DNA of 64,000 nucleotides from Phallusia mammillata (Eukaryota), in contig OZ281495.1 in assembly GCA_965637545.1 (NCBI GenBank), positions 8,060,001-8,124,000 on the forward strand. Direction: 5' to 3'. Positions within the stretch are counted from its first letter, which is position 1. Each line of letters begins with the position of its first letter. Both the position numbers and the translations under genes were made by a program. Shown here piece by piece: positions 324 to 64,000 of this stretch. A model generated the notes under the pieces. That model made no database searches. It had not been told where the DNA came from and worked only from the letters and a program-made list of their open reading frames with translations.

Positions 324-2277
324 TTGGGAAACTTTTCAGTTGTGACTTTGAAAGTGGTTTGTGCAACTTCACTGATGATTCGAGCGCTCATTTTACTTGG
401 ACAAGAAATAACGGGTCCACGGCTTCAGACGGTACAGGTCCAAGTGTAGATCATACACTGGGAACGACTGGAGGTTAGTACTCAAATATGAAAAATGGGA
501 GAATTCATTATTAATACCAAAAAAACCATATAACTTAAACATTTTTTAGATTTTACCTGCATAAAAACACACTTAAACTTGTTCAATTTGCAAACCATAA
601 TCTGACGATAAATTTTTTTGAAATTATTTCTTCACTAAATGCTTTATGTTTTTAAATAGGTCACTACATGTACATTGAAACGAGTGACCCTCGACAAAAT
701 CTTGACAAAGCAAGAATCGTTTCACCAATGTTGCCACCAACCAATGGTAAAAAATATATTATTCTCCATGTCATTATCTTTTTTTGGTGGATCAATAATA
801 TAGTTGTTTGTTATGTAGTGATTTAATTTTATTCCCAAAAACACAAATTTTGCAAATTTACAGACTAAAGGTATTCTTTAACGCACAAATGTTAAACAAA
901 GACTTGTTCAAACGGTTTGCAAACATATTTTTTACAGTTGTAGTGAATTCGGATTTCTAGTGCTTATATATATTTTTTAATTGAGGTTTCTTATTTAATT
1001 GAGACACAATGCAAACGTTGTATAGACCAAATATACGATTCTAAAACTGCCATTGCTCCACGAATTAATTCCAGGAAGACGGTTTGGGTAATCTTACGCG
1101 CTTTTTTGCTGGTTTAGACACTAAATATGCCTCTGTGTAGGAAAGTAAACCTCGGTCAATCCAGACCCATTTGGACCAAAACAATGTTGGTATATGACAA
1201 AAACACAAATTAACTGATGTCAATTAGTTAAAGCTTTTCCACACTATACACTCCACACAGTTAAGCTTAATTAAGCCTATAAACGATTGATTATGTGTTT
1301 TTAACTAGTTGTTGTTTTTTACGTTATCATGCATCAAAAAGTTATTGAAATGAATGTTTTTTTACAGGTCAATGCCTTAAGTTTTACAACCATATGTATG
1401 TAAGTATTAGAAAAACTACTTACAAAAACAATTAAATCGCTTCAAAGTAACATTTAAGACTGTTTAATGACTTGCAAATCCACACCTTGGCAAGTTAAAA
1501 ATGATTTCAGATTTCACTAGAAATGACGATGTTCTTTTTGCAAACGACAAAAAAAATCAAAAACAATCATACTTCTCAATACCTAATAGGGCACCGTAAA
1601 TCTCCTATTTAAATACATTAAACGACACAGATTTGTTTGTATAGGGCAACCACATTGGAACATTGAAAGTCTATTTAAAGAGACCAAATCGTTCCAATGC
1701 ATTAGTATGGAGTCTGAGCGGCAATCAAGGTAAGAGATACATTGTATCTGTTGGCAAAACAAACAAATGTGAGGCAAAGTTTACATTTTTTGGTCGCGAA
1801 ATACTCTTTTCTTTTATGTCCATTCAAATATAATTTAAGCGGTGGTGGTTGTAATACAAAACAGTGCTCTGGCGTCATGTTTACTAATGTAAAACTTAAT
1901 GCTTTTCGGTTCACAATAGTACAATAGTAAAACTTTTTACACTCTTTAGAGTTTGTGTAAGTTTTAACAACCAAAGTCATCTGTTGCAAAAGGTTAGTTA
2001 AGGTACAGTTAATTATATCACACTTAGCAACGCCTTATCGCAGTTGGACAAACCTTGTGTATGAGATAGAACTAGGTCCAGTCAGTCTAAGCCACTTTGA
2101 TTTCATATGTGGTGCAGTTTAAACTAAATATTGTTATCAGGTGATGTGTGGTCGTTAGCAAGCGCAACCATTACTTCGACAGAGCCCTTCCAGGTTGTGT
2201 TCGAGGGAACAAGGGGCACAGATTACGAAGGTGACATTGCGATTGATGACGTAATAATCAGACCTTTTCGCTGTTGA
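324..2277 (+). CDS. Gene A: C-terminal MAM domain exons of a gene whose 5' part lies outside the window
   Basis: GT-AG exons 324-473, 660-746, 1368-1399, 1645-1729, 2141-2277 join in frame: GKLFSCDFESGLCNFTDDSSAHFTWTRNNGSTASDGTGPSVDHTLGTTG/GHYMYIETSDPRQNLDKARIVSPMLPPTN/GQCLKFYNHMY/GNHIGTLKVYLKRPNRSNALVWSLSGNQ/GDVWSLASATITSTEPFQVVFEGTRGTDYEGDIAIDDVIIRPFRC*. Hallmark MAM motifs CDFE, GPxxDHT, YMYIE, GDIAIDD and all 4 Cys. Confidence 0.9.
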
Positions 2278-2647
2278 TTTCAATTGTATTATAACGACAT
2301 ACACATGAGGTTATAAATTTGATGCCTGAGTTTTTGATAACAGTTTTGCCACAATTTTGTTATTTTTGCAAACATGTGGTTCAATCTATAAACATTTATT
2401 TGTCACTGAAAGTCCAATGAGAACTGAATATGTTTTTGTTTTACTGAACACAAATCATAATTTAGTCTTTTTGGTGTAATCAATCCATTGCCATTTATCC
2501 AATCCAATGTAAACGCTACTCTGTCCAAACCGCTTTATATTGCATTTAACGCTTCTTCTAATATTTTTCAACGTAATTTCAAAATTGTGTGATGAATCTT
2601 ACAGAGTATGTGACCCAATGTAAATACGTGCATGACTTGTATGTATA

Positions 2648-2653
2648 AATAAA
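2648..2653 (+). terminator. Probable polyadenylation signal of gene A
   Basis: AATAAA in block taaataaacggtgt, conserved at 15903-15908 downstream of gene B. Confidence 0.5.
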
Positions 2654-3008
2654 CGGTGTAACGAAAATAGAAATGATTGTTTAAGCTTCATTAGAAAAAA
2701 GAAAGGATCGTAAACAGTGGTTTCCAAACTTGTTTGCTGTAACAGAAGTGCAGCTTTCGTTGGCATCTACTTTCTGTAACATCTCGTGTTTGGGGCAGTC
2801 GCTTTGCCACAAAAATTCACGACCAAAAAAAACATGAAACTTTAGCAAATGTGTAGTGCTTGTGTATATAGAAACACATTTTATAAAAGCCGAAACGCTG
2901 CGGGGGAAATAAAGCGAAGACGATGAGACGGTTATTATAAGACAATAATTCTATTTTAATGAGGTGCTAATAAATTTAAATGCGTTTTGGTAAAGTATAT
3001 AGTAGGTT

Positions 3009-4143
3009 ATGGAATGTTTGTCCAGATTGATTCTGTTCGGCTTTCTTTGGTACAATATTTGCGTAAACGAAAATTAGACTGATGTCTGCAAAAGTAAGTA
3101 CAACGCAAAACAAATTATTTCACAATAAAAAGTTAAATTCCTTTGAAGTGTAGTGCATGGAATACGGCTTAAAATACTGAATTTTCATAAAACCAGTCTT
3201 AGTGACGCGCAAAATCCAATGCTATACAAAACATATTACAAAACTGTTACACGTCATCTGGACATTATTGAGATAAAAAGTGCAACACATTTACGTGTTA
3301 TGTTTGATTCATTCATCCAAAATAAATACAGCTAAACATGTAACAGTCGATAATACATGTAAACTATATGAGCTATTGCACTTTTACATAAGGTTGCGTT
3401 GCGATATTAATTGGACAAACAAAATTTCGGCCAAATTTATGATAAAGTTTATTGCAGTGTTTACTTCAGAAATGCTGTTTTCAAAAAGTATAATTCTGTT
3501 GTCAGTTCGTTTTTGCGTTCACGCACAGAACCGCTATTTCCACCCAGGCAAGATACTTTCATGGTTGTTTAATGCTGTAGTTTTTGTACATTTTCCCATG
3601 TCGCCTAACCTCCCAACAAATTCCAAAAGAACTATAAACATTTTTATAAATGTAAGTTTTTTAATAGCTTTTTCAGGAAGAAAACTAAGGTAACAAGCAT
3701 TTTGTGAGTAATTTTTACTGCAGCCATTTTCATCGTTGCAATATCATTGTGTTAGGCAGTTAGGACGTAAGTTAGTTTTTATTAGATTACTATTTTTGTG
3801 ACTCTATAGTTGGCATTCCTAATTTTTTTTTAAAGTGGGTAAACGAGATGTAGACTATAAGGTTCCACAATGGGGTAACAATAACAAGTATAATACGGTA
3901 CAACTCATTACCTTACATTGGACCAAACTTGACGTGGTTTGTGACACAAAATCTGTTCAATCGCGTTTTTCAGCCCGAAACAAGAATCTTTGATGTTGGG
4001 CGGATAGACGTGATGTGAATGCGATCGCAAATGCAGAGGACCATCCACTATACAACCACGACAACTACAAAGCACGCCAACTGGTCTTCAGCAAGTGCGC
4101 GAGAGTAGCAGCTAATATTTCAAGCAAAATATTCGCTATACAG
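3009..4143 (+). pseudogene. WSC-like secreted protein pseudogene, copy 1
   Basis: Signal-peptide-like exon 3009-3093 (MECLSRLILFGFLWYNICVNEN*TDVCK, in-frame TAG 3075-3077) and exon 3974-4143 (ARNKNL*CWADRRDVNAIANAEDHPLYNHDNYKARQLVFSKCARVAANISSKIFAIQ, GGA>TGA); later exons replaced by unrelated sequence. Confidence 0.7.
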
Positions 4144-5297
4144 GTGGTGTAGTAAAATCCAATAAGTTCATTCATATTCGACAACCTGCCATAAACTTTC
4201 GACATATGTTCATGCCCATAGGCGCCGAGTAGGCGGTTGAAGGGTTGCGCCGCCACCTAGGATTTGTAAAGCACGGTGGCAGCCATCAGAGATATTTTGG
4301 TTTGTTTGTAGCCGTATCGTACGAAATATCGTCAAATTTGAAGAAAAACAGGAACAATTTTTCTTTTGAATCTTGTTTATGACGTCAAACACACAACCGT
4401 CTGCCATTGTGTACAATGCGAATGTGTTGTAATAAATAGTACAGTTTTTTTAGGATAGAAAGCAGCAACAACCGGACAAAACATTTTTAAACGTTGCTAA
4501 ATCAATGACTAACGTTATATCAACGTGTTGCAGCACCTACTAAATATTATTTCAAACGTATCGTTTTTTTTCTAATTTGTGGCGAACTTTGTATTCTGTT
4601 TGAGGTTTGTTGGGGTTTGAGTTTTTGTGATTGCACTCATTAGTGACGTCATATTTTACGTCGCCACGTTCCCTTTTTAAAAATTCGGCATGAAGGCGAG
4701 AAGTGGTTCGTAATTTTAAACTTTAGGCGTTAGAGGGCTAAAGTTAATAACATAGGGGCGTATATAACACCGACTGCGGCCAAAATTGAGCCCGAACCCA
4801 AATTGAAAAGTACAATCCGATTGATTGGATCTGGTCTGCTCAATGCTGATGAAAGAGTTTTCGATTGCAACTAAGAAACCCAAGGCCGAACCCGTCCCGA
4901 AAAGCCCGGTCTGATTTACAACTCCGCAGGGTACAAACAACACTTTTTAAAACTTTCTTTCCAAGAAGCTTCGTGGTGGCAATCTGACACTAATGGGCGA
5001 TAGAGAGCCACGTCGTAAAACTCTCCGTCGAATGTAAACTCTCATCTATTACAGAAATCGTGTTTGTATGCTTTACAGGAAATGCCTGGGGTGCAGAAAT
5101 GGTCGAGTGACTCGACTCGAGTCTGCATTTTGTTCACGGAAGCGGAAAAACTCTTAGGACACAGTAGTTATATTAAGTAGAACTCGCTGTAACTAGGTCG
5201 AAATCAAAGATTTATTTGGCCTTATTAATAAGTTGTTAAGTACCGTGAGCTTTGTTGTGATACGTAAGCTTTATATGCTTTATGTCCGACATTTACA

Positions 5298-5665
5298 ATG
5301 ACTACATCGAACAATGATACGCCTGGAATTCCGATGGAGCTTTCGCGAAACGGTAAGTAGCAATATTTTAATCCACCTGGAAGAAAGAGTATACAAAGTA
5401 GAAATGCCGAAGCTATACTACCTTTAAACGGATCAAGTTCGAATTTTTAAATGATTTCATTCAAATCTTAAAGACAACGAAATTTCGTCGTATCTTTTGC
5501 AGAAACAGATCAAGGCATTTGTAAGATGAAAGACAGCGAAAGACGTGAAAAGAAGCTGATGGAAGCATTAAAAGTGTTCAAAAAATCTGAAACTGAGGTT
5601 GTGTCTTCTCTCCCTGCTCCTGATTTTCGCTGTCGGATTTATAGCTTTTTATTTTTCAGTACGAT
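5298..5665 (+). pseudogene. Type-2 (Tyr-less) receptor pseudogene, exons 1-2 only
   Basis: Exon 5298-5352 MTTSNNDTPGIPMELSRN and exon from 5503 ETDQGICKMKDSERREKKLMEALK; relative to intact gene F exon 2 it has lost 5 nt just before the TM, shifting the frame; no stalk exons follow. Confidence 0.8.
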
Positions 5666-6287
5666 AGCGTGAAAGTTAAATCTAAAAATCTAAATCTAAC
5701 ATTTTTTGAGCTATAGCAGGGGTCGTATTTTATCATGGAATTAAAAAAAAAGAAATTATTCTAAATTAAAACACTTTTTTTTTTTACTGACTATCCAAAT
5801 TTTAAAGAATATACTCTATGCCTAAAAGCGTATTATGAACTCAAATGATAATGCTTTGTTAGTAAACAATCAAGCAGGATTGTTTATGACGCTTTGGCTA
5901 GACTGGTGTCATGCTTATCTGGTTTCATGATTTTATAGCATGTAATGACGCAGTGCTAAGTAAATAAAAATGAGGCAAATAGCGTGCCATCATTTATTTT
6001 TGCCAAAGGAATAAACTTTTTTCAAATCAGAAACCCGAAAACAGCCACACCACAAACCGTATAGTGCAGGTTCAAGCTGCTTCACACGCAAAAAAACGCT
6101 CAGTGCAAAATCGCTGGCTTATTCCTGCCTGACATGAGCCCCGAAATCTGCCCAGCGTGTGACCGAACAGAAAAAATAAACAAGCGCACCTACACAGGTT
6201 TAAACGGGTGCACGCGCTACGCACATTGTAAACGGGGCTTCATACTTCGAGTGAGTGATAAGCTTTAACAGATAACTGCCTAACAAA

Positions 6288-9200: not shown

Positions 9201-12200
9201 AGCGCGTAATTATGTTATTTTTGCAATATGACAGCAGCCGTAAAGTCATCTAATGCTGTAGCCATAAAGTTACCCACGTTTTGGACAGCTCAGCTGCGAA
9301 GTTGGTTTTAGCAAGCAAAACCACAGTTCGCTAGTGTGTTTTATTCATGGTGTTTGTTGTTACTGCTTTATGTGCATTTAACCCACATTGGTACTTGTTT
9401 TCTTCTCCTTCTATGTAAATATTTTTCGATTGATTCTGCAATAAACAAATATCGCTCTAAAAAGTATTACTTATTTGCGAGTTATCGAAATTGTCGAAAA
9501 GTCGAGTATTTTCGACCGCTATTCGGCGCCGATCTTCTCAGCGCACATTTCCTTTAGCCTCATCGATGCCTTCTCCAGCGTTGCACAAGGCAAATCATCG
9601 CAATCAGCGTCTCGCCTTAAAGCTGTTTTTGTAGACACGTCAGTCTATGCTCGAATATTGACCGAATTCCCAGGAATAAGAACTCCACATTTTTTACAGT
9701 CGCTTCCTAAGCATGGAGTTTAGTATTTTTTCCCCCGATGGCAAATCCGTCGCTGTCCTGAGAAGCTCGGCCTCGCTAAAAAGGAATTCCACAACATGCT
9801 GCAACTAGGCATTATTCAAAGTTCTTCAAGTCCATAGGCTTCGCCATTGCACATAGTTTCGTGCGTCGGGTGGCGCCCCTGCGGCGATTAATACCCTCTT
9901 AAAGCAACTACCTACCAGAACTTGGCCGATTGATCTGGCGCGCCTGGCCCATAAAAAACCTTGATCGGAATTGGTCCCCGGGAGCATCTTGGGTTCGAAC
10001 CCCGTGAAAAAACTACCTTACCTGACTCTGACGCTATTTCTCACATTTAGGACTTTTCGGCTTGGTTCTAGTTTTTGAGAAGGTGGTAATTCTTATCGGC
10101 TCTAATTTTCTCTATTGTTATGATGGAAACAGTAGCAAAACCAGAGCTGGTTTTATTTAAATATCATGAACCACTCGGAAATGTCACATTTATATTTCTC
10201 CCTCCGTTTCTCAAATCTTTGCGTCATTCGAAACGTATAACTAATGCTAGTTACATCAAACCAATTTGATCGTATGCTGGCGTAACGCACCTGTCTAATG
10301 TTGACGTCACTGAAAATAACGGAATTTTGATTTGCAAGCTTTTAAAGATAACAGGTCGCACAAAATGTTTAGGCCATTTGAAAGTTACATATGCCGTGTT
10401 GTAATTTTTATGTTGTTGCACTTTGTAGAAACGGTTCAAAGCACCCCCGCTGTGAGAAGCAACGAAAAACTTGAAAAGATGATAATTGAAGAAAAGCGTC
10501 CAAAGCAATCGAAAACTGATGTGGTTGAGTCTAATCTTTGTACTCCTGATTTTCACTGTCGGATTTGTCGCTCTTCATTTCTCGGTAGGACTGTGCGAAC
10601 GTTGATTTCGTCAGAATATAAACTTTAAAACGAGTCATCAAATTTTGCATCTTGTCTTCAAAAAATGACAAAAATTGCTATAGAATAGCAAAAGTCGAAA
10701 AATAATTGTCAAAAAGTGTTTAGTGGGTTCGGACCTTTTTCAAAAGTGCACCTACCGTCTTTTATGTGGCCAAATTAATTTAGCTCTTTACATGCTTGGG
10801 GCATCAAGACTAAGGGTCCACAGAAACGTTTTGTAGTGTTTAAACGTGCTACCAAACACATTTTCCCACTTTACCCTTTTTTAATAACTGAAAGGTTGCA
10901 GTAATACTGTACAACAATAGCAAATCTTTGCTACATGCTACAAACTTACCCTTAGTAACACCTGTTTCAGGCACCTATTTTAGATCTCATATAAAAGGCT
11001 TGATCTGGCTCTCCTGTGGTATATGCAAAACATGCCAAAATACTCATATACATATCAAGGTAGTAGGGTTAAACGTTTTTAACGTCTTATATTGATTTTT
11101 CAACATAAAGAAAAGTCGGCACATCTAATGACATTTGTGTTTTTTTGCCAGATTTCTGCAAAAGTAGAAACGGAAACAAGACGTGGTAAGATTGGATCAT
11201 TTTATTCATTCAGAGTGTTACTATTTAACATTCAATATTGTAAAACAGTCACTGTAACTACGCATTTTGTAGGTTTGGAATCAATTGAGGAGCAACATAC
11301 AAATTACCAAAGTTAGTGACTTCAAAATTTGCTTGATGTTAAGACTTTTAACATGCAATGTCTTTGCGTTCAATACAAAGCTAATGCCAATAGTGTCTTT
11401 GGAAATCCTTAGCCAATAACGTGTTTTAAGTCATGCACGGTGAGAACGAGGTTTAAAAGTGGTATTTCATACAGAGATAGCCCTTATCTTGATGGTTGTT
11501 GGATAATTTTGTGAAACATTTCTTTACATCTGGTCACTGCGCATTTTATCCATTTTATAGTTCGACCAAAAAACATGCAACAGAAAGTCTTCTCCGCGTT
11601 TATGTTTTAAACGTATCGGTTTCAAGTCATAATTAACTATTGTCGTGTATCCATATTTAAACCTTACTTTCTTTCATTCAGCAATGAGTGCAAATTGTTC
11701 GAGTCGTCTCACCGCAACAAACATCAACATCGTAAACATTCATACATCATTGGCAGCTTTGAAAGGTAAAATTGATTGTCTCGTTATTAATGTACCGTTT
11801 TAGGCTCTGCAGAGGGGTGATACTGCGATGCTGGCAATCCTACCAATGTATAAGTTTATCTTGCGAAACTTTCGACACCATATATCTGCGCATTTTTCGC
11901 GACATACGAATTATCAAAGTTAGTGACCTAAAAAATTGCTTGACTTTGAGATTTATAAACCGTAAACAGGCAGTGTATTTGCATTCTACACAAAGCAATT
12001 TGCAATAGTGACGTTCAAACAATTTTATTCACTACCGTATTTTAAGTCATACGCACTGCGCATTCGGCAAAACTTGGAGCTTATAAGTTATTTGAAGTTA
12101 TTCTGCAATCATGTTTTATGCCAGCACTTGTATTCCATCACAGGCTACAAACGATTGCTGGCAAAAAATCCTTAAACCTTATTTATGTTTAGTCGAGTCT

Positions 12201-26772: not shown

Positions 26773-26977
26773 TGACGTCATTGTAAACCCGAAGGTAGCA
26801 TTTCTCGCATGCTCAATTGGAAATCCCCTCCTGCGTAAAACGCGGAAGAAGAATGACTCCTTAAGACACAGCCCGTTTCGAAAGAAGAACGCGCTGGAAC
26901 TATTTCCAGTCCTAATTAAAGCATAAAAACGCACTGCTGAGTATCAAGAGTTAGACTTCGTCAGAGTGATAAGCTTT
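26773..26977 (+). promoter_or_regulatory. Gene C proximal promoter/5' UTR with CRE, kappaB-like and GATA motifs
   Basis: TGACGTCA 26773-26780; GGAAATCCCC 26819-26828 (reverse complement GGGGATTTCC fits GGGRNNYYCC); GAGTGATAAGCTTT 26964-26977. Confidence 0.5.
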
Positions 26978-26997
26978 GCATGCAACTGCTAAAGACA

Positions 26998-46310: not shown

Positions 46311-46599
46311 ATTCTGGGACACTAAGTGGCGACAGAGAGCCAAAGTTATAAAATTCTGCGGAATAACTAAGTCGGAATCGATTATTTATTTGGCCATAAT
46401 CGTAATACTGACTTTAATGTAACTAGGAATTTTTCCAATATTTTCTCATAGGACAAAAACAACGAAATATTTGCCTGTCAGTCACATCACTTAGAATTTT
46501 GGTCTCAACAATTTTAAACTTTTTTGGTCTCTACAACATTTTCGAAATTAAATTTAAAATGTGTTCTGTGATAATTCCATTTCGCCATATCGTTTGCAG

Positions 46600-49950: not shown

Positions 49951-52900
49951 ATGAATTCACGTAACTGCGACCCGCCCAAGATGGAGATGGAGGAAAGTTA
50001 TTATGGTATGTAGCATTTGTTTCATTTAACTTACATAAAGTTAAAGTATAATCCCTTTGCTTGATGCGGACCTGAACGTTTGGTTTTTCTAAGACGATGT
50101 TATGTTAACGCAAAATCAGATCAATTGATTTATAAGCAATTACGCAAACAGGTTACTTTTCTCATCCCAAGAGAAATTCCCGCCCCCTGTTCTCCATCCC
50201 GCCCTTTTAAATGCAGTGTGGTGAAAAATTAACATCACAGACAAAATGCTAACATAGCGCATTTTCGTAAAGACGTCTTTACAATTATTATGGTTTTAAT
50301 AAACGGTCGCTTAACATCTCAACCCGTTTTAACTGTTTAGTTTTGGTGACCGTGTTCTTTGAGATTCTCAGAGAGGCGATTGCATCCTTTCAGTAATAAT
50401 AAAGAGTGACTTGAGTGGTAGGCAAATGCAGAAGAATAGTTGTATTTTACCGTGTTCTTTGCAGAAACGATTCGCAGCATCTCCAAGTGAGTACATAACG
50501 CATTTGCGCAGTACTGAGAACGTAATTCATTAACAAACTTTTAAACAGAACAGATCGCATAAACATCTTTGTTCATTCTTAAGTTAGATATGTCGTGTTA
50601 TCATATTACTGTTGTCTTGTGCTTTGCAGAGAATATTGCCCCACCGGAGCAAAGCACCACCAGAGTGAGAAACAACGAAAGCACAGAAAGCAATCGAAAA
50701 TTGATGTGGTTGAATCTAATCTTTCTACTGCTCATTTTCACTGTCGGATTTGTCGCTCTTCATTTCTCGGTACGAATGGGCAAAAGTTGATTTGACAAAC
50801 ACTAAAAAAGGGTGAAGAACGATAATTGTCAAAATGTGATAAGCTGTTTCTAAATTTTTGGGCCAAAATGGACCTATACTGTCAGCTTTTTACGGATTTT
50901 AAAGTTTGCACTTATTTTGGTTGTTGGGCATTATAGGCAATTTATGCACGTGTTAATAGGCATCAAGGCAAGGGGCCACAACACTTTCAGCATTTATATG
51001 TACCGCTAATCGGATTTGTTTCTTTACACTGCGTCATTTTCTATAAAATATTGCACATAGCACAACAACAGCGAAATATTTTAAAGTTGTTTTGCTCTAT
51101 TCTTACCCCCAGTTATAGGCTTCTAAATCTTAGTGACAATAGGGCCAATATAAAAAAATTGATTGTGCCCTTGCCTGCGGTCTAGGTAAAATGTACTTAA
51201 ATAAATATTTTTCAATACTCAAATATCAATGTAAGGTGGTCAACCTTTTGTAACGACGTAGCCCATATCGGTTTTTAAACGGGACGACATGCTAGCACTA
51301 TAAAATTACATTTGTTTTTCATTAGATTACTTCAAAAGTGGAAAGGGAGTGTAAAAGTGGTGAGATAAGACCATTTCCTTCATAAACTGTGTTATAGGTT
51401 TATATTTTAAAAATTTTTAAACGTTTGCGTTAAATTGCGGGACATAAACGTCCTCAAATACCCTAATTACATATTTAAATGTTTTAAAGCCGTTTTAAGA
51501 TTAACCTCTAAAAACTTATTGCCAGTGTGGCGATATTTTGCACCAAAATGTTTCAACATAATCCAAGCATTGATCCATATTACTGTCGTGTATTCACGAG
51601 TAACTCAACCCAAATGCTTCTTTCATCCAGGAATGAATGCAAACGATCTACAACATCTCAACACTACGAACAGCAACATCAAGTCCATTCAAACGATTTT
51701 GACCGAATTGAAAGGTAAAACTTTGTTAGCATATAGCCTCGTTTTCTTGGCAGTAATTTAAGTTGTGGAGTAGTACCAGCAGTTATGTCATGTCACAATT
51801 TATTACTTTTAAACACAATTTTTATTTGAAATAAATATTATTATTTTTGTTATATTTTTAATATTTCAAACCCAGACCAATTGGAGAAAAATCTAAGCTC
51901 GCTTGCAAGCAGTTTGGAATCAATTCAGGAGCAGCATTCAAGTTATCAAGGTCAGTGTCACAAGCTTGTAATAATCATAACCATCATCCAACAAACGTGG
52001 CTTAACAACCGATGGCTGCGGAATAAAGATTTTAGCACAGTCTTGTGCATTCGGGTGCAACTACCATCGTTTTTGGCCTATGTCCCTGTTAAGTTTAACT
52101 TTTTTGGTTTCAGACTAGACTGAAATGGTGTAACACGAATCACGAAATGCCAAAGGGTCATGTACATCATGTGATTTGCATCAACAAATTTATTGACCTA
52201 ACAAATGGTACAATGTTCCACTTTGATTCTCATTGGGCGAAAAGGCATTGAGCTCAAGCTAAAACCCACCCCAACAGGAAAAGCCCAGCTCGGTTTACAA
52301 CTCTAGTTCACCCGCTGGATTGTCTCCCTTTTTATTTTTTATAAATCGATGACATAACTTTAATTCAGCATACCTCTGGGTTAGAGCAATGGGGTTTAAG
52401 CGTTAGTTTTCTTGAGGAAACACAAGTCCTAGAGAAATAAATACTGTTCGCCTAAAAATAGCACAACACTTTGGCTTTGTTCTTTTCCAAACATTTCCCG
52501 GAAACAAAGAGGACCACGAAAAGTTCACTTATAACACAAACTTGTAAGACTTTTGCAACGCGTATTTCCGTGTTGGCGACGCAACGCAAAGCCTGTCATC
52601 TTCGTTTTTGCTAATCTATTGGTAAGAAACTTTGTAGCACAATATGTCTTGTAAGTTAATTCTTGTCTGTTTCGTTCGTCCACAAGTTATAAAATGTATG
52701 CACAATAAACAGGTGAAATTTTGTAATTTTTTTACGAATTGTCTCAACAGATAACTTGACCAGGCTCTCATTGATCGCTTCAGAAAGGCAATGTCTAATA
52801 CAAAGTAAGTTTGTTACCGTTATAATCAATTTAATGACGTGAGGTGCCAATGAGGCTATCTTATAGCAACAGACAGCAACAAATGTTGGGCTAACAAAAA

Positions 52901-55829
52901 TATAGGTTTAATTTTGTTGAAAACAAATTCTCAACCAAAATTGGTAATCAGCAATTTTTATAAAGCAAACACTTTTTGAAGGTAATTCATTCGTCGATGC
53001 ACTTTCCAATTTCTCATCAAGCATCTTTCAGAGCAGTTTGCCCAATTACTACGAATTTAATTACGACGGAAATAACAATTACAGCATAAGTGATGGTGGA
53101 CATGATATGTATGACACAGGAAATAAGGTACAGTGTTATGTAATTTGGACTCATACGTTTATTGGTTTGAATTTTAAAACGTAGGTGGACAATGAACAAT
53201 AGGATTTGTTATTTTTTTGTTGACTTTGCTTCAAGTGTAAACAGTATTTTTTTAAACATTTAGCTGAAAGTCTGGAGAAACAACGAGACGAAAGTGCAAG
53301 TCATTTACAACTCGACTTATACGTAAGTGCCACTGTTGCAGAACATTTCCACTAGTGATGCAACGAACCCGCCTGAAAAAGGGCCGAAACCAAATATGTG
53401 GACAATATATGACCGAACCTAAAATCTTTTTTTAAAGAATGTTTCTAACTAAACCCTTTATTGTTAATGCAGGTAAACTAATTTATGGCACTTCAAACAA
53501 GTTTTACAAACCGTAAGCCACATAAAACACGAAATATTATGCAGACGACGTGGCTTCCAGACGCATAGATTAGTTAATTTGTGACGTTTTAAGTTGGTGA
53601 CACTGAAGTTGAAAACTTAGTAATCCAGCCCTGTTAAATACGCTGTACCAAATCAGCCAGTTCGGTTTAGGCTAATGGTTCTCAACTGATTCTGATCGCG
53701 TATCAATTCCCGGCTTTTCTATCGTTTCGTACCACCTAAACCCTGTTCGAATGGGTAGACCAAGAAATAGGCCTACTTTTTTGACCCTGCTAACATAACT
53801 CTGAAACCAGCAAGGTTAGCAATTTCAAAAACAATGCTTAGGACACGAAATTTCGAAACCAGGCCTGATCAAAGTGGGTTGCAGTTCTTCATCTAAATAG
53901 AATAAGGTATAGCAGAAATGCACTGGCGTACGAGCGAAAAAGCTCCGCCAGATACTACTAGAGGTTCGCCTACCAAACGTGTCACGGAAAAAAAAAACTG
54001 GTATTACAGGTGTCACGGAAGGTATTACAGGTGTCATTGATGAATGACTTAGTTTGTATAACACGTGTCACTGGCAGCTAATTGTGGCCTTACAAGACAC
54101 GACTCACTAAAAATTGGCTCGGCCTGTGTTAACTTGGCACTGAAATATGACTTGCATGGCAGGTGTCAGTGACGAAAGAATGACATATTAATCGTGACAC
54201 TTTGATCATTATTGACTTCACGCTTTTTTATTCTGTTTATGACTCGAATTCAAAAATGGTTTAAAAGACACAATATATTTCGTTTTGTTTAGCCATCCTC
54301 AAGGCTATTTTTCCATGGTTTGCAAAGCGTTGCACCCATTCGTCTTATCTATGCTGGTGTTAAATCCTGGTGGAAGATCCTGGCAGTATAACATCAAGGT
54401 AACATGTCAATGATACAACGCATACTTTAATCTGATATGTAGGCCATGCTTGTCATTAAAGTATTCCTCAAAGCAGTGTTTTGCAAAGTATTGGCCCCGA
54501 CCTGAAGTTTTGTCGCAAAAAGTGTTCTAGCCTATTGGTATTTTAAAATTTGTAACCTATATAGTAAACCAACTGACAGTGTAGTGCATTCTTGCGACGG
54601 TGTAAACTAGTTTTTCAGCTAACTGCAAACTGTTCAGTTTTCAGTGTAAAAGTGCAACTCAGTGTAATGCAATCAACCCGCCTTAAAGTCGAATTTTCTG
54701 TAAAACATGACGAATAATCTGGGTCGATTCTGGCGTCGGAGTTTTGATGATATCTTCAGTCTAGCAGTTATTACAACTGATTTAAAGGATCCTTAGTCAA
54801 GTTTTTTTGCACTTTGCGACAAAATATACTTAAATAAGAAAGTTCAACGTATTTTATTACAAAAAAGCTGCTATAGAGTGTTTAAAATTAACTATGTTTT
54901 AGGTTGATGTTTTCAAAACATCTGTTGTATTTTTAAAACATGCATTAACAGGAAATGGGTGATTTGGGAGCAGACGGCAGAGGAAACTATAATTGGAGTA
55001 CTGGATCTTTATCCGTCAGATCATTTAACATACAATACGTGTTGTATCAAGTTTATGGAACCAGCGATCCTTCCATCATACAGATATTCTTTGCAGTGTC
55101 AAGTCCAGTACGTAGATACATATATAAAAATTAAACGTGTATATCACAAGGAAATGAATTATTTCAAAGATAATAGAATCAGCTCCAGCAACGTACATTT
55201 GATTGTTTAGATACTTGGCTCGACAGGATCCAGTTCTCTACATTATGTGGATTCGCAGGGAAACACACGAGAAACCGATCACAAAGTCTACATTTCAGGG
55301 ACCGCTCACAACGTCTACTTCAACTATATTCTAATATCCACGTAAGAATTTATTAAGCGCTTTCGGGATATTAGTCATAAAGAAGTTCTGTCTTTAAATT
55401 GTGTGCAAGACGCACAAATGTTTTTTGGGGCCTCGTGTGTGATTTGTAAATCCAAAATGACTTGGAAAACTGAAAGGTTAGCCTTTTAGCTCTTTTCTAA
55501 TTTCCTTTTAAACCTAAGCTAAACACACACGCAATCAACAGGAAAATATATTAAGGCAGACAAATTCAAATTTCCTGCATCTTCCGTCACTACAGGCACC
55601 AATGAGACAATAGTTTATGCCAAACAAAAGGATAATTTACTTCATCTACCGAAACAAAGTCGACGCAATGTAAAAAACGTTTTTTCGAACGATGCTTAAC
55701 GCGATTCATTTTAGTAACGCTCTACGTTTATTGTTTGCTTTTATTCAGCCAATCTAATGTCATTTTAGGTATCCATCGTCTTATGTGCCAACCAGTACCG
55801 TTGAAGCGATCCTGCCACAGATTTTTTAA
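49951..55829 (+). CDS. Gene E: type-1 type II membrane protein with the uncharacterised head, 366 aa, intact
   Basis: Exons 49951-50005, 50630-50769, 51326-51359, 51631-51714, 51876-51950, 52751-52804, 52982-53127, 53264-53322, 54293-54398, 54952-55107, 55211-55341, 55769-55829; 1101 nt, no internal stop. Tail MNSRNCDPPKMEMEESYYENIA; head motifs YSISDGGHDMYDTGN, CKALHPFV, GDLGADGRG, YQVYGTSDPSIIQIFF. Confidence 0.85.
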
Positions 55830-57418
55830 GATTTATTGAAGCAACCGGTCCCAATATACAGCACTCTATTTCAAGCATGCCACGCATCAATATGTCACGC
55901 ATCAAAACATGCTTGTTACAAATATTTTAGAGTGTTTCTTTTCATGCCACATGTGTTTGGATTTTAAACAACAAAATTACACCTGTTTTAGGAAAGTAAC
56001 AGTCAAATAGTAACGCTGTGAAGGTAGACCCATCACCTAAGTTGCTTTGATACCATGAAAAAGAGTTGTGTTAATGTTAACAAAAACTAAAACGCTATTG
56101 AATGCAAAAACACTGATAGTCATGGATACAGATGGTCTAACCAGTGTAATAATGTCACAATTTTAATTGCTGTGAATGTTAAATTAATTTTTAGGTATGC
56201 CAAGTTGTTGTTACATTAAGGCTTTTAAAATAGTCGTAATGGATAGACGCAATTTAAACAAATTTAATGCGTTTTTTAATGTCCCGAAAATGTCCTCATT
56301 AGAAAGCAGACAACGCTTTCTGATGCTATTTTTTTGAAATGCGAGAAAGTTTTGTTGCATATTTAAGTTATTGTGGGTCGACTCTATTTGTAAATTGCTT
56401 TATCGTAAAAAATGTTACGTGTTTATAATTGTGCTGTGGCGACTTCTCTGACATGTTTACATCCCTTTAAATCGGAGCGGGCGTTTTGCCTTTTTCTCGC
56501 GCTCTCGTTATCGCCTTGTAAACGCGTTTTTCCTGTTGCGCGGTTTTCTATCAGTGAACTGCTGTTAAATAAAGCAACTGCTTTAGTAAAAAGTTAAAAG
56601 CATTTGCATTTTCGATTTCAGTGTTTTCCATTTATAAAATTTGCTTACAAATTTAAGATATCGAAAAACAAATTGTCACTCAAGTGTTTACCTTTTGCCG
56701 ATATGTTTGTTCAATAAAGATTGTCGTCTTTTAAATTTGTTTGGGCCGTTATTTTCCTCTCCGAGCTACTGATTAAATAAACTGATATTTTTTGGCGGCT
56801 AAAATGTGACGTTTTTAAAAAAATTAACAATCACTCAGTGTCGTATGTCACAATTGACCGATTTGATTTGTAATTACGTGTCTGTGTTCGAAGTGCGCTA
56901 TAAATAAACATAAATTGCACTTTGATTTAAAATTGACATTTTTTTAGGGTTACCATGGATGAATTCTAACGCAAAACGTGTAAGTGCTCTTGCAAAAACA
57001 GGGTGTTCGTAATCAGGGGTATACGACCGCCTTTTAGGGGAGTTCAAAAATGCTGAATCAATGAGATAGGGGTATAGAACTTAAGTTACTTTTTCCAAAA
57101 AAAATTAGTCACCTTACTAAAGCGATTGTTAAAAACTAACAATGGTTTTGGTCTAAAGTCGTAAGATGGCTCGAATTTCAAGCCTAAAAACACCCAATTT
57201 CTTTTTTTATACCAACGGAAGCCGATGGAAAATTGGCAGGCTAATTTAATCTTGTGCTCAATGTCCAGGAAAACGGTGCAAATGCAAAGATTTCAACAGA
57301 GTTTAGCCACCCACAATATGTAAAACGCAAAAGGACAAAAATCATATCAACCTTTACATTGTATTCATAACTTGAATGGCTGTTTCGTTTGCCCGTGACT
57401 GCAATAGGGCAAACAGAT

Positions 57419-57990
57419 CAGAGCTGCAAGTAGGGCCGGGCTTTTCGAGTCGGGTTCGGGCCGGGTTCGGGCCAGGTTCGGGCTGGGTTCGGGCCGGGTT
57501 CGGGCCGGGTTCGGGCCGGGTTCGGGCCGGGTTCGGGCCGGGTTCGGGCCGGGTTCGGGCCGGGTTCGGGCCGGGTTCGGGCCGGGTTCGGGCCGGGTTC
57601 GGGCCGGGTTCGGGCCTTGTTCGGGCTTAGGTATTTGTGAGAAAACGGGCTTATAACGGGCCTGACTTTACGTCCCGTTTCCGCCATTTTTTTAAGTAAT
57701 GTCACTCATCTAATTAGCAGGTCTCTGGCTTTTACCTGATGTCCACCCCACTCTAAAACGCATTGTTGACCTCATTGTCTACTATTGTTCATTGTGTTTG
57801 TTGTCATTTTATTTTTTCTTTCTCATCCTTTGTTGCAAGGCTTTCGTGGATAGGCATGTCAATCAAAATTTCGGGCCTAAACGGGCTTCTCAAAAACGTT
57901 TCGGGTTTGGGCCGGGCTTCGGGCTTCGGGCTTATACTTTCGGGTTCGGGCCGGGTTCGGGCTCAGATTTTAGGCCCGCTTGCAACTCTG
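57419..57990. mobile_element. hAT-type MITE with internal GC-rich minisatellite
   Basis: TIRs cagag(c/t)tgcaag; perfect 8-bp TSD aaacagat. Decayed relatives at ~4720-4925, 7715-7800, 36620-36790, 49420-49480, 52255-52305, 61840-61925. Confidence 0.9.
57452..57627. repeat. 11-bp tandem array (GGGTTCGGGCC) x15 plus one degenerate unit
   Basis: Read directly; only two of the 15 units carry substitutions or nearly so. Confidence 0.95.
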
Positions 57991-58529
57991 AAACAGATAG
58001 TTTAGAAGTTACACGAAAGTTATAAAAAAAACATCTTTTTTTTCTCCTAAAATGTTGCAACTGGTAATTGAAATGAAGGTGCATTTTAATAAACAAGAAG
58101 CTTTCTACTATTTAAACAAATCCGAAAATGTATGCGGGCGCAACTGAAACAAACCAATCCGTGCTATCAGAAATATTCAGCTTTTCCACTACAGCGTTTT
58201 TTTTTGTTTTTTTTTTGTTTGATTCGTCACGGAAATCTGACACTAATGGGCGACAGAGAGCGTAAGTGAATATTATTACAGCTAAAATAATAAATAAAGA
58301 TGGTAAAACAAGCTAACCGCAATGCAAAAATATTTTAATGATCGACGTCGGACTATGTACGAAGTCTAAACAAATTACGACAAAAGTGTCAGAGGTCTGA
58401 CTTTCCTCAATCCATGACAAATTACGCCACTAATCTAGCTACTAAGTGGGGTAAAATCCTGGGACGTATTTGCCGTCAGAACAGACCACAAAGCGTGGTA
58501 CGGGTCATGACCTTTTTTACTTGGTAAAG

Positions 58530-58840
58530 GCCATAAAGGATCTACTTGCCGGAATTACGGTATTGACTGGATACGTGTACTCTCTGCAAGCAAAATTACG
58601 TGGGCCAAACGAAAAACACAGCTTCCATAGGATGGAACTCACACAGGTCTACATGGAACGCATGCAACCTTTTTGCATCAACAACAGGGTAGCAATGCTC
58701 TTTCATTACCATCTCAACCATCCGACGGTTTTAAAGAAAGAAAAAACGGTATCGAGCAATGCTTTCAAGTGACGTTCTGTTACCAAACCCTAAAATGTAT
58801 CTTGGTACAAATGCTCCAACCCAATCCGTAATAATCTAAA
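58530..58840 (+). mobile_element. Penelope-like GIY-YIG relic, copy 3
   Basis: TCRNYGID..[frameshift]TCTLCKQNYVGQTKNTASIGWNSHRSTWNAC. Confidence 0.7.
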
Positions 58841-59395: not shown

Positions 59396-62300
59396 ATGGC
59401 TACGTCGGACAATGACACGCCTGGAATTCCGATGGACTTTTTGCGAAACGGTACGTAGCAGTTTTCTATTCCTATTTGCACGAAAGAGTACATAACGTAG
59501 AAATACCGAAGTTATATAGAAATAAATTGATAAACTTATACAACAAAACTGAAAAAATTGTTGTGCACAAAGCAGTAAAAACTGGTTTTCCCACAAAACA
59601 AAATGTTTCATAGGATAAAAATAACGAAATACATACTAAATTTCGCTATTTTTGTTGCAATCTTACTTTGCAAAATCTTTTTAGGCACTAATTTTGTTTT
59701 TCTTAGCCCGGCATTTTATACATTTACTTTCACCATAATACCCCCAGGACAATATTATGAAGTGACATATTTTCCTGTCAGTAACGTCACTTACAATGAT
59801 AATTTGATATTTGCAAATTTCGGCTTATCATTCAAATTGCAGTAGTTTAGGCGATAATTTCGTTCCGTCATATCGTTTGCAGAAACGGATCAAGGCATTT
59901 GCGAGATAAAACACAACGAAACACGCGAAAAGAAGCTGATGGAAGCATTAAAAAGTGTCCAAAGAAATCTGAAGCTGATGTGGTTGTGTCTTCTCTCCAT
60001 GCTCATGATTTTCGCTGTCGGATTTATAGCTCTTTATTTTTCGGTAAGATTGGGTAAAGTTTAATTAACGTTTAGAGCCAAGATCAAGATCTTAATTAAT
60101 ACGGGTGTTCAAAATTCGACAACAGTGCTAGAGTTGGAATAATAGTAATCTAACGCAAGAATTTGTGGGTAGATCACCATCGATAGTTACACAAAAAAAT
60201 CTATACTGGAATGCATATCTACCTCTGCAATATGCGGTAAAACTAAGACTAAACCATTAGAGCTGTAAAGAAAGATGGTGAATTTGTAGTTCATTTGAAT
60301 GTCGTGTACTGGTTTACAAATAGGACTAAATTCGCATTCATTTCAAATATGTTTGATTTACTTGTTAGATTTCTGCGAAATTGGAAGTTGAAATCAGAAA
60401 AGGTAATCACCAATTAACATTGACAAATCAACAACTTTCTGGAGCTTCTTTTGATGATGAATTCAAAATCCCGAAAGGTATGAAATCTAAACGCATTTGA
60501 CTCTTGTTTCAATCACTTAGTCCACTTCTTATGAAAAGTAAAAGAAAAATACAAATATATTTTACAAACAGAGAGTTAAAAATATGTAAAAGTGAAAACA
60601 TTATCGTTTAAACAGACTGTTTAAAAACAAAATGAACGGTTCCGTTTTTGTTTAACTCTGTTGCAAAAATTTCACTTTACAGGCGATGTACAGATTTACA
60701 TGCGAAAAATGGAAAATGATTTCAAAAACTTATGGACTCAGAATTCCAAATTTCAAGGTAATTGTTGTTTTACCTACTTTTTCGCTTCAGTCTGGTTGCA
60801 TTAATTTGTCTGCTCATTCTGTGAGGTCTGGTTTGACATTTAAACTCTAGCTTTCCAAGACAAGTTGTAAGTTTAGCCAGGTTTTTTAGACTAGTTCGAT
60901 TTTGGGTTTCAGTTTGAATAAAACGAGCTTGACTCGGACACGTCGGCAACATTTGTGTCATCATTTTACTTTTCATTTTGGAATAGGTCTAATGCGACCT
61001 GTATTTAATAAAAATAGGGTTTGGGATAGCTTGCAAATCTGCAAAGTCAGCAAGCAAAAAAAATCAAATAAATTTATCGTTGAGTGTAATTTTGTAAGAA
61101 TTCACGTTTTTAGATTTGATTCAACACAACTTGACGGCGATTGCTGACGGTTTGGCGAGACTAGAAAACGCTTCAAGAAACACAGAAGGTAACATGAAAA
61201 ATACCGTTTTGATATAGGTCTGGTAGAAAACCAGTAAAAACAGACCCACCTATGATAGTAATTAGCTGTGAAATCTGTAAATCCAGAAACCAATAAAGTA
61301 CATTTCATACCAATGTAAAGTTGTGTGTCATTTTTTTTGTTAATTTGCTACACCTTTTAACTTAATTGGAGCCAACTTAGCCCACTCCACTCTTAACTGG
61401 AAATTGGCTAAGATTGAACTCCGTGACATGAAAGGTAAACTTGATTATGATAAATTTCCTACTGTGCAGTGTTAAAAAAGCGTATGTCTTAACATGTTTA
61501 ATAACAAGCTGGTTAATTTTTTTCATGTACTTATAGATACTGTACACCACAATCTAACTGAAATTGTCGGCATATTAAACAAAAGAGAAAATCAAGCAGG
61601 TAATCAAAACATTTAACATTGCTTACATTAAATAGTTGTGCTTCTTGGATGTTCACATATTACACTTTGTGCGTAAAACTACTTCAAAACTGCCAAATGC
61701 CGTCTTATAACTTCGCCATTTTTTCAGATTTCGTTCAACACAACCTGTCCGTAATTACTAAAAGCTTGGTTAGACTTGAAAGCGGTGTAAGGAATGCGGA
61801 AGGTAACATTAGGTGTTACAACAGTTGTTTGACGCAGTGTTGTAAGTCGGACTGGTTTCGGGCCAGGTTCGGGCTTGGGTTTCTTAAAAACGGGCTTGAT
61901 TGCGGCCTCACTTTACACTCTGCGTCAGTTTTTTTATTTAACTAGCTAAGTAGTCAAATGCTGGACCTGACCTATTGTCAAACAGCCCTAAAACGCCTTG
62001 CTTAAAACCAATTGTCTATTGTGTTTATTGTCGTGGGTCTTTTCTAAGGTTTTAATGCAGTAGTTCTCAAACTGTGCGTCTTTCCATTTTCGAAGCTGGT
62101 GCGTCGCAAGTCCAGAAAACTTTTTCAGAGGCGTCGCTACAAAAAAGTTTGAGAGCTACTGCGTTAATGTATACGCCTACAATCAGACTTTCGGGCTCAA
62201 ACGGGCTTCCACAAAACGATTTGAGTTTGGACCGGGTTTCGTGCTTGTAATTTCGTGTTAGGGTCTGGTTCGGGCTCCAGTTTACAACTTGGGTTCGACG

Positions 62301-64000
62301 TTTGTATGTTACACATTTGTTAGAAAATTCTGAAACAAACACATTGAAAATAGAATTAATTAACCTATTGCATACTACAAGTGTTTCTTGTTATCCATTC
62401 TAGTTTGGACTGTACGTTTGCAGGATAGGCAAAAAACGGATAATTGCATTTATACTGTTTTAAACCAAATATACAGCGTTTCTTTAACAGATAAAATGAT
62501 TCGTCCAATTCTACCGTTGAAAATGCAGCAATCCTTTAAATATAAAGCGATTCAAAAATTGCAAGATATGAATTCGTTTTTCCAATTAAAATAAACAACG
62601 TGTTGCGTAAAATACGAAGCTGCACTTTATATTTTACCACATTTCCCATTCAAAAACGGTTTATAAGCCGACTGCATAATTAAGTGACGGTTAAACGAGT
62701 TTCGCAAAATCAAGGAAGCCCTGCATTACCATGCGTCGTGTTACGAACTAAGTTAAGCAATTTATACGCTAATAACATTTGTTACACAAATTGGTCAAAG
62801 TGATTTGTTTCACAGAGTTGCTTCAGAATAGTTTAACCAACTCCAGCTACGAAATGCAATCAATTTCAAACGACTTGCGTGACATGAAAGGTAAACTAAC
62901 TTAAATGATACTTTGCTGTATTTTGTTTCGTATTTATTTCTTTGACTGTTGCAAGGTGTTGACCTAAGCATAATAAATAAATGCAGACATTTTTAAACAA
63001 TACGTACTAATGTAATTGCAGTAAATAGATTTTTTTCAAAGGAAGTACTTTTAAAAGCTATTACAGTAACCCATATTTCAGTGTCAAGCTTTTTTAGGCA
63101 CTGCAAATGAGTTATTGAGCTTGATGCAAAATGTGACTTTCAATTTCACCAAACAACTACCAATCGCTGATGAGCAGTCGAACTTGATTCTTCAATCACT
63201 TGAAAATATCTCTCTAGCTACAGCAAGTTCAGAGAAATATATTAAAGGTAATGTCGTTAACTCTTATTATCCTATGACGTTAGTGGTTACGTCAATGTTT
63301 CCCTTTTGTTGCGTGCCCATATAAGGCAAAATGGTTATGCTTTAGGGCAAAATGTTTTTGCACTGATAATAACACAGGGATTGTTTGCAGTAAACATTTT
63401 TTTTTACTATATACAAAGGTCTTTGCCACTTTTATTTCGATTAAGCTATTAACGTTACTGTCTGTGTTCTCAAACGACAATGTGATTCGTTTGTCCATAA
63501 AAAACTGACAGTTTTCAATCGTTAAAAGTCACGCAATTAAACTACCTAATTTGTAAACACATAAAGAGTTGTTTAAGTAAGCGTTAATTCGAGAAACAAC
63601 AATAAAATTGTTTTTGGCACTTGCCCATTGGAGTGCATGGACAAAAATAAAAATATAAGTCATGCCTATTTTCTCTCTAAACATTCCAATCAATCCCGGA
63701 AATAAACGCCACAGGGGATACAATTGCATGTGGCACGAGTGTCGCTGCAAACTGATAAAACCACAATTAGCTTACATACTTGTTCGTGTTTTTCAGCTTT
63801 GCAAACCAATTTGGTGAAACAAACCAACGTTTCAATCATGGGAAGTCAGTCGGTGGAGAATAGTTTAAATTTGTTGAAAGGTGAGGTTAAAAAAGAAACA
63901 AATGCCCAATAAAAAGCTTTTTTTTATTTTTGCAGAAGAGTTGAAGCACAACATTACCTCGATATCTATCAATGTTAACGCTTTGCAAGCCCAACACACC
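59396..64000 (+). CDS. Gene F: type-2 (Tyr-less tail) type II membrane protein with a long repeat stalk; 3' end beyond the window
   Basis: Exons 59396-59450 (MATSDNDTPGIPMDFLRN), 59883-60043 (ETDQGICEIKHNETREKKLMEALKSVQRNLKLMWLCLLSMLMIFAVGFIALYFS), 60369-60402, 60683-60757, 61114-61188, probable 61381-61434, 61537-61599, 61728-61802, 62816-62890, 63098-63247, 63797-63880, 63936-64000+; all stop-free; stalk exons phase 1/1. Confidence 0.85.
62058..62161. mobile_element. Short hAT-type MITE
   Basis: TIRs cagtag(t/c)tctcaaac; TSD ttttaatg/cgttaatg; related to 20790-21004. Confidence 0.7.

Follow-up and report, generated by a model that had tools for sequence, protein, structure and literature searches.

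The closest described counterparts of the locus treated here are the vertebrate type II C-type lectin-like receptors (Ly49/NKG2/CLEC, CD209/DC-SIGN, langerin, and CD23), in which a short N-terminal tail, a signal anchor, and a helical neck precede a C-terminal binding head, and whose genes, arrayed in tandem, include pseudogenes and undergo gene conversion. In class A scavenger receptors and collectin-12, likewise type II, members of one family hold up different heads (SRCR or lectin) at the C-terminal end of a coiled-coil stalk. A third point of reference is the MAM domain of meprins, RPTP mu, neuropilins, MDGA, and enteropeptidase, a domain that to our knowledge is always extracellular; those described are type I, GPI-anchored, or multidomain, and no MAM protein is known to us that consists only of a type II anchor and a stalk ending in the MAM domain.

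The 64,000-nt stretch of Phallusia mammillata DNA analysed here (the window, which has no N runs) holds a real gene cluster with every gene on the + strand, to which all coordinates below refer. The original prediction compared it to the NK-complex/CD209 layout, and the predicted proteins are laid out accordingly (a signal-anchor TM follows a short N-terminal tail, and a helical, exon-modular stalk carries the C-terminal head), although the parallel is by analogy only. We favor, as rather probable, the reading that the genes form a tandem array from a lineage-specific ascidian family whose products combine a type II anchor, a stalk, and exchangeable heads. Six genes (A to F) had been proposed: C, D, and E are intact, A and F are cut by the window edges (A is a 3′ end and F a 5′ end only, with the 5′ part of A and, as foreseen, the head of F lying off-window), and B is probably decaying.

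The common anchor and stalk

Genes B to F have homologous TM exons with the predicted F-S ending, HFS in B (10429-10584), C (27770-27930), D (38082-38242), and E (50630-50769), and YFS in F (59883-60043). Behind each, again as predicted, lies an I(S/T)(A/S)K exon ending in phase 1; it measures 31 nt in C (28433-28463) and 34 nt in B (11152-11185), D (38735-38768), E (51326-51359, reading ITSK), and F (60369-60402). The stalk exons that come next are homologous between genes, 39-84 nt long, and all phase 1 to phase 1. They lie at 11273-11311, 11682-11765, and 13039-13110 in B; at 29250-29333, 29940-30023, 31050-31103, and 31325-31369 in C; at 39512-39595, 40191-40274, 41246-41299, and 41520-41564 in D; and at 51631-51714 and 51876-51950 in E. 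For F (59883-64000), candidate symmetric stalk exons of 63-84 nt, picked by splice sites and open phase only, are 60683-60757, 61114-61188, 61372-61434, 61537-61599, 61728-61802, 62816-62890, and 63797-63880. Because all stalk exons begin in phase 1, as does the opening exon of each head, stalk units could be gained or lost and heads swapped with the reading frame kept; the head-swap breakpoint is the intron after a shared stalk exon.

The 5′ ends are less uniform than had been claimed. A common 55-nt exon 1 was proposed for B to F, but D alone keeps both the ATG and the GT donor (exon 37982-38036, next intron 45 nt). C has a shifted ATG and has lost the donor, and its ORF still reads through in frame from 27670; B and E have lost the ATG, and the 5′ region of F within the window has no equivalent exon. 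The start codon differs between genes, and trans-splicing at the 5′ ends of the cluster genes is possible. With AG/GT at every intron, the intact ORFs encode 412 aa in C (27670-33536, start/TM exon 27670-27930), 398 aa spliced or 413 aa unspliced in D (37982-43738), and 343 aa in E (50590-55829, start/TM exon 50590-50769, the TM exon proper beginning at 50630).

A protein record and spliced RNA contigs support the exon joins of C/D/E-type genes. The P. mammillata protein record P0059 (374 aa), with which gene C is colinear, carries TM, ISAK, stalk, and head in one chain, its Met 16 residues before the hydrophobic segment. The original prediction had called for RNA mapping of the junctions. RNA contigs join stalk and head exons exactly at the modeled boundaries (on C, 29333>29940, 31103>31325, and 33112>33452), but they are only 90-95% alike and therefore come from paralogs, and no read or contig among the RNA matches comes from C, D, or E themselves. 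Searching for proteins that share the chassis (P0059 residues 1-145, the search narrowed by length and word filters) returned only P0059 itself, and exact look-up of P0005 and P0059 on contigs gave no match on record.

Each gene is predicted to encode a membrane protein that crosses once in type II (N-in) orientation: the cytoplasmic tail is very short, the signal-anchor helix has ∼20 residues, the stalk is alpha-helical and N-glycosylated, and a single globular head forms the C-terminus. Mean Kyte-Doolittle hydropathy of the TM segment is 2.6-2.9 over 19 residues, with 3-4 K/R on its N-side and 2-3 on its C-side, and in C, D, and E the N-glycosylation sequons number 7-8 behind the TM and one ahead of it. 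At heptad a/d positions of the stalk the hydrophobic fraction is 0.63-0.69, as compared to 0.41-0.48 in shuffled sequences (0 of 500 shuffles reach the observed value), and residues 6-143 of P0059 form long helices in the AlphaFold model, at modest pLDDT. Such a heptad-periodic stalk would probably form a coiled coil, and so an oligomer. From sequence we infer the type II topology, surface location, oligomerization, and ligand; their likeliest role would be binding at the cell surface (adhesion, scavenger, or lectin-like) by oligomers whose stalks keep the ligand-binding head at a distance from the membrane. Inspection by eye of the translated tails and TM segments of C and D showed neither an ITIM/ITAM motif nor a charged TM residue. 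Treating C and D as “paired receptors” was rejected, the opposing signaling features not being seen.

MAM heads and a new head domain

The MAM heads proposed for A and B are borne out, each comprising five exons, with single exons scoring above the Pfam PF00629 cut-off of 26.4 bits (in A, 32.1 bits for exon 1 and 39.2 bits for exon 5). Those of A (324-473, 660-746, 1368-1399, 1645-1729, and 2141-2277) have AG/GT at every junction, are entered in phase 1, and end in a TGA directly after the last MAM cysteine. Gene B (10429-15479) is 76% identical to A over 161 codons; its MAM exons are 13592-13741, 14019-14105, 14467-14495, 14981-15065, and 15343-15479, the last with the stop. All four conserved MAM cysteines are present in A, whereas in B the third is missing because exon 14467-14495 has lost 3 nt. 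Loss of 5 nt ahead of the TM also puts the tail of B out of frame, and B's sole in-frame Met coincides with the beginning of the hydrophobic segment. WSC-like exons behind A and B were considered as parts of their heads and rejected: a conserved TGA ends both MAM exons, and the WSC-like exons, which have their own signal-peptide exon, are separate small secreted genes.

As predicted, C, D, and E carry a different, common head of six exons and ∼200 aa with no Pfam match, nor any in NCBIfam. Its exons are 31597-31739, 31860-31918, 32047-32152, 32408-32563, 32982-33112, and 33452-33536 in C (canonical sites throughout); 41792-41934, 42055-42113, 42243-42348, 42616-42771, 43184-43314, and 43654-43738 in D; and 52982-53127, 53264-53322, 54293-54398, 54952-55107, 55211-55341, and 55769-55829 in E. 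It has a conserved acidic DGGxDMYDxGN loop and one cysteine only (the whole E ectodomain has two). The AlphaFold model of the head (pLDDT 90.7) is a predicted beta-supersandwich. The best structural matches listed are all supersandwich domains, from carbohydrate-active enzymes, mutarotases, and YidC; among the best rows, VIA-align to the galactose-mutarotase-like beta-supersandwich fold gives Z of 7-9 over 160-190 aligned residues, a middling match (Z < 10) that says nothing firm about head function. An atlas structure search with the head gave TM of 0.5-0.6. The PDB yielded no match at E ≤ 0.001 with Foldseek and none by sequence search with the domain profile, and ESM Atlas feature-search scores (≤0.83) were noise. 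Pfam scans of the head exons, P0005, and P0059:145-374 gave no lectin family, in agreement with the earlier statement that the window shows no C-type lectin domain, and no catalytic domain was found in P0005 or P0059:145-374. A supersandwich head may bind glycans.

This head had been called an unknown domain, but it is no orphan: it belongs to a family common to bacterial surface proteins and giant ascidian proteins. Aligned by hhalign, ascidian and bacterial copies match at 99.5% probability (E 6e-23, 184 columns), and hmmsearch retrieves full-length bacterial copies (model positions 2-205 of 207, domain E down to 3e-14 at Z = 1e6). Homology covers the whole ∼200-aa domain, with DGGxDMYDxGN, G(A)DGxG, and DPS motifs in common. 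The bacterial hosts are giant surface proteins of Bacteroidota, Verrucomicrobiota, and Planctomycetota in which the domain is unannotated; the two scanned both have a T9SS sorting tail and Ig-like domains, and one a subtilase. Ascidian hosts are giant proteins with tandem modules in Ciona/Phallusia (LOC104266555), Clavelina, and Styela, one of which also carries CUB domains. In these bacterial and giant ascidian proteins the domain is a module, often in tandem, of secreted proteins of 800-3,400 aa, whereas C, D, and E have just one copy, at the tip of a membrane-anchored stalk. In the domain tree the window heads group with ascidian copies, and P. mammillata has at least five distinct head paralogs. 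Profile search found no single-domain relatives other than P0005, P0059, and P0086, and IMG/VR viral contigs hold no head relative. The bacterial “Ig-like/gliding-motility” proteins of the first phmmer search (P0003, P0006, P0008, P0010, and others) were rejected as homologs, matching only 45-80 mid-domain residues, in ∼95-aa repeats; an iterated HMM drifted onto the same repeats, and the true bacterial relatives come from a related-locus search and a clean HMM.

One speculative history, which we think unlikely, is that the head descends from a bacterial surface module by horizontal transfer, multiplied in giant secreted proteins, and then in Phallusia was exon-shuffled onto a pre-existing MAM-receptor chassis, giving new surface binding receptors, possibly for glycans or microbes. 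With its confident predicted fold and conserved motifs, and its span from bacterial surface proteins to sea squirts, the domain can be written up as a new family whose ligand binding is testable.

Turnover of the cluster

Birth-and-death evolution, as originally proposed, agrees with the relics and dead exons, with the decaying state of B, and with a gene-conversion tract. Self-comparison by blastn places the tract at 28744-33732 in C and 39011-43934 in D; the two are ∼95% identical there, introns included, as compared to 76-86% in the flanks and TM exon, and dS between C and D is 0.034 in the head vs 0.50 in the tail and TM. Gene conversion of ∼5 kb has homogenized the C and D ectodomains. 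The predicted relics also exist. At 5483-5685 is an F-like TM exon (86.5% by blastn to 59863-60068, also found by alignment and tblastn) frameshifted by 1-nt and 3-nt deletions and accompanied by ∼300 nt of F-like upstream sequence at 5119-5417. Sequence comparison identifies another, truncated F-like TM exon at 46570-46736 that runs into a stop and has no donor, part of an element (46570-48303) with degenerate F-like stalk pieces at 47389-47575, 47808-47907, and 48140-48303. A dead stalk exon in C (30196-30244) has the acceptor AC instead of AG, and its copy in D starts at 40437; an expressed paralog uses the homologous exon. In the favored reading, tandem duplication and decay shape the cluster, together with exon shuffling and gene conversion. 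Two unrelated heads on one phase-compatible anchor-and-stalk within a 64-kb cluster would be exon shuffling caught in the act.

Possible roles and comparison with known receptors

The original prediction went further and suggested receptors of immunity or allorecognition, comparable to the lectin-like receptors of the NK complex; such a set would diversify under pathogen or self/non-self pressure. We regard this as a tentative and rather unlikely reading. It would suit a cluster with duplication, relics, gene conversion, and exchangeable heads, a head related to bacterial surface modules, and the number of head paralogs in the species; in the recently converted C/D ectodomain, moreover, dN/dS is ∼0.9-1.3. 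This ratio, however, rests on only ∼16 amino-acid changes and could reflect relaxed constraint as easily as diversifying selection. Long-term dN/dS of 0.3-0.5 (0.32 for the C-E heads, 0.46 for the A-B MAM domains) is ordinary purifying selection, and the tails and TM segments of C and D, inspected by eye, offer no signaling motif or charge.

Somewhat more doubtful is that a cleavable signal or a cut stalk frees the products as oligomeric soluble binding or matrix proteins, for example of the tunic, mucus, or egg coat. The positions of the Met in B and in P0059, close to the hydrophobic segment, are compatible with this, as is the occurrence of the head in giant ascidian proteins, one with CUB domains as expected if secreted. 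Yet the hydrophobic stretch, with ∼20 residues, is closer in length to an anchor than to a signal peptide, the helix is preceded by basic residues, and the conserved HFS|IS site has His at -3, which under the -3/-1 rule makes a poor signal-peptidase site. That the proteins are Golgi or ER residents with a lumenal carbohydrate-handling head is improbable: a short tail, signal anchor, stem, and globular lumenal domain is also the glycosyltransferase/sulfotransferase layout, and the supersandwich fold is one typically seen in accessory domains of carbohydrate-active enzymes, but the scans found no catalytic domain, a heptad stalk of 65-100 residues is unusual for Golgi enzymes, and the presence of MAM heads on this chassis speaks for the cell surface.

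We return to stalked, anchored surface binding proteins as the favored reading, for which Pfam, NCBIfam, protein, and literature searches gave no named family with this architecture, as had been anticipated. The MAM heads of A and B are those of the known MAM proteins by Pfam match; the arrangement below them is not known to us from those proteins. Unlike class A scavenger receptors and collectin-12, the cluster has no collagenous Gly-X-Y run in its stalk translations, no SRCR match in Pfam, no lectin domain, and no sequence similarity to them. As compared to the C-type lectin-like receptors, its heads are MAM or putative supersandwich domains in place of a C-type lectin domain, its stalk is built from many small symmetric exons, and ITIM/ITAM motifs and charged TM residues were not seen (C and D, by eye). 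It is reasonable to regard the architecture as convergent, and the likeness, drawn by analogy, as one of design, not descent. If these are recognition receptors, they would show that a chordate has arrived at the “stalked type II receptor” design with no C-type lectin domain.

Shared chassis and 5' ends

The architecture set out in the original prediction, putative type II receptors built on one chassis with exchangeable heads (the C-terminal globular domains), holds up and has firmer documentation than before; the immune role proposed there stays hypothetical. Each gene was read in three frames with AG...GT demanded at every junction, and these models, together with tblastn and DNA alignment, uphold a shared chassis of transmembrane (TM) exon, I(S/T)(A/S)K exon and phase-1 stalk exons. 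Homologous TM exons are found by tblastn and DNA alignment in five genes (B, C, D, E, and F) and in two F-like relics. All five genes follow one phase pattern: the TM exon closes with (H/Y)FS in phase 0; next comes an exon of 31 or 34 nt that opens with I(S/T)(A/S)K and finishes in phase 1; the stalk exons (39–84 nt) each run from phase 1 to phase 1; and the head starts in phase 1. Genes C (27670–33536), D (37982–43738), and E (50590–55829) are intact, with products of 412, 398 (413 with the 45-nt first intron retained), and 343 aa. F (59883–64000) is present as its 5' part only, its head lying off the window, and A (324–2277) as its 3' part only, encoding a MAM head. B (10429–15479) is probably decaying: relative to C and D it has a 5-nt deletion directly before the TM segment, which puts the conserved Met out of frame with the TM, and its third MAM cysteine is gone through a 3-nt deletion. 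The remainder of its reading frame is open, and translation from its sole usable Met would give 260 aa.

The 55-nt exon 1 originally assigned to B–F survives as a coding exon, with ATG and GT donor, in D alone. In C the ATG is shifted and TT stands where the donor would be, yet the reading frame continues unbroken. The ATG is gone from B and E, and no counterpart of the exon exists in F. B, C, D, F, and the 374-aa P. mammillata database protein P0059 share a Met ∼16 residues ahead of the first Met of the TM (∼13 ahead of the hydrophobic core), which may be the usual start. Ahead of the TM exon, B, C, and D share conserved CRE-like motifs (TGACGTAA and TGACGTCA; 10280–10310, 27650–27685, and 37965–38005), and F has a variant, TAACGTCAC (59780–59795). 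These motifs overlap the proposed exon 1, part of whose conservation may therefore reflect a promoter instead of coding sequence. This 5' correction, the decay of B, the separation of the WSC-like genes from A and B, and the identity of the second head are new relative to the original prediction.

The TM segment is strongly hydrophobic, basic residues are commoner on its N side than on its C side, and seven or eight sequons follow it. The predicted topology is most naturally read as type II, and an extracellular MAM head requires it. Heptad periodicity of the stalk exceeds that of all 500 of 500 shuffles, and an AlphaFold model renders residues 6–143 of P0059 as long helices.

Spliced contigs come from four small runs, none recorded as RNA; they match exons at 90–95% likeness and skip introns with GT..AG precisely at the modelled boundaries. 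We therefore take them as spliced transcripts of paralogs. They back the joins 29333>29940, 31103>31325, and 33112>33452, likewise h2>h3 and h3>h4, and in a 441-nt contig five stalk exons follow one another, among them one whose counterparts in C and D are dead. No contig reaches 99% likeness on the exons of C. The unaligned part of one RNA contig labelled P. mammillata encodes TLLIFAAGFP, as in the TM segment of P0059.

MAM heads, conversion, and repeats

A and B each have a MAM head, and in both genes TGA comes right behind the last cysteine. The WSC-like exons behind them (3472–4146 and 16767–18342, with a relic at 24522–24944) were considered as parts of A and B and rejected: the MAM heads already end in TGA, and the WSC-like exons form separate small secreted genes with their own signal-peptide exon, which has a conserved GC donor (CAG|GCAAG). 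Their Pfam WSC score, 23.3 bits, is below the cut-off of 27.8. The second WSC-like unit of copy b shifts frame near 18100–18125, and an in-frame stop interrupts the copy at 24.5 kb.

C and D are ∼95% identical over 28744–33732, introns included, against 76–86% in the flanks and TM exon, and dS is 0.034 for the head against 0.50 for the tail plus TM. This pattern of identity and dS indicates a gene conversion of ∼5 kb across the C/D ectodomain. Between C and D, dN/dS is 0.9 for the head and 1.3 for the stalk, on few changes; it is 0.32 for the C and E heads and 0.46 for the A and B MAM domains. The last stalk exons of B (13039–13110) and E (51876–51950) are homologous (80% by blastn over 12983–13122 versus 51825–51962), and the former feeds a MAM domain whereas the latter feeds the other head type, which puts the head swap in the following intron.

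Compared with itself, the window (GC 35–40%, no N) has several large + strand repeats, including 313–4145 versus 13581–17355 and 26886–36067 versus 37221–46339; smaller matches link 10.4, 27.7, 38.0, 50.7, and 59.9 kb. An intergenic repeat is common to 35290–36070, 45490–46340, and 58450–58840; a motif in its ORF fragments recalls GIY-YIG nucleases of Penelope-like elements, and three fragments scanned against Pfam have no match. Units of a minisatellite at 57376–57630 can be read as GFGPGSGRVRA, and GFGPG-like stretches also occur at ∼36.6, 49.4, 57.9, and 62.1 kb. Between B and C, a series of open frames with a faint DUF4806 match (21438–22948; E 0.006) is probably transposon-derived. Dozens of unrelated RNA contigs cover 29494–29634, in an intron of C, on both strands and at high depth; this is probably a dispersed SINE or MITE-like repeat.

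Relatives and predicted fold of the C/D/E head

The ∼200-aa head of C, D, and E has no match in Pfam or NCBIfam. With one head exon as query, phmmer against 1.84 billion representative proteins retrieves two Phallusia proteins, giant ascidian proteins, and three metagenome proteins. The closest are from Phallusia mammillata; P0059 joins the TM, the ISAK segment, the stalk repeats, and the head in a single chain, in the exon order of C, D, and E. In the giant proteins (Ciona, Phallusia, Clavelina, and Styela), as many as seven or eight full copies of the head stand in tandem. A scan of bacterial genomes finds 48 loci, in which a clean profile built from ascidian copies (207 model positions) matches full-length copies (model 2–205/207), with domain E-values down to 3e-14 at Z = 1e6; profile-to-profile comparison of ascidian and bacterial copies gives 99.5% probability (E 6e-23). 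The bacterial host ORFs measure 870–3,460 aa from stop to stop. The two hosts scanned have T9SS sorting tails and Ig-like domains, one of them also a subtilase, and the head-homologous stretch is blank in Pfam and NCBIfam. A quick tree places bacterial copies on one side and ascidian plus metagenome copies on the other, the C, D, and E heads clustering tightly with P0059 and another database protein, P0005; being unrooted, it gives no direction of transfer.

A distant copy, P0086, occupies 1777–2760 of a compact, possibly viral contig of 6 kb (L001) from a public run; the neighbouring gene encodes a Peptidase_S74 (tail-fibre chaperone) domain. In mid-head, 32408–32563 (GADGxG...Y...V) is similar to Ig-like repeats of ∼95 aa in bacterial gliding and T9SS proteins. 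This is local similarity only, its very low E-values arising because similarity is summed over many repeats, which accounts for the bacterial-looking motifs noted originally.

In the AlphaFold2 model of the head (pLDDT 90.7; 32 aligned copies), a large beta sandwich is flanked by one helix at the N terminus and another at the C terminus. Foldseek of this model against the PDB returns nothing significant. The top ranks of an exhaustive aligner hold supersandwich domains only (Z 7–9), and an ESM Atlas search agrees (TM-score 0.5–0.6). Such matches to predicted structure support a fold class rather than a function for the C/D/E head, that of the supersandwich domains ranked highest: the N-domains of GH94, GH65, GH63, and GH116, the mutarotases, and the periplasmic domain of YidC.
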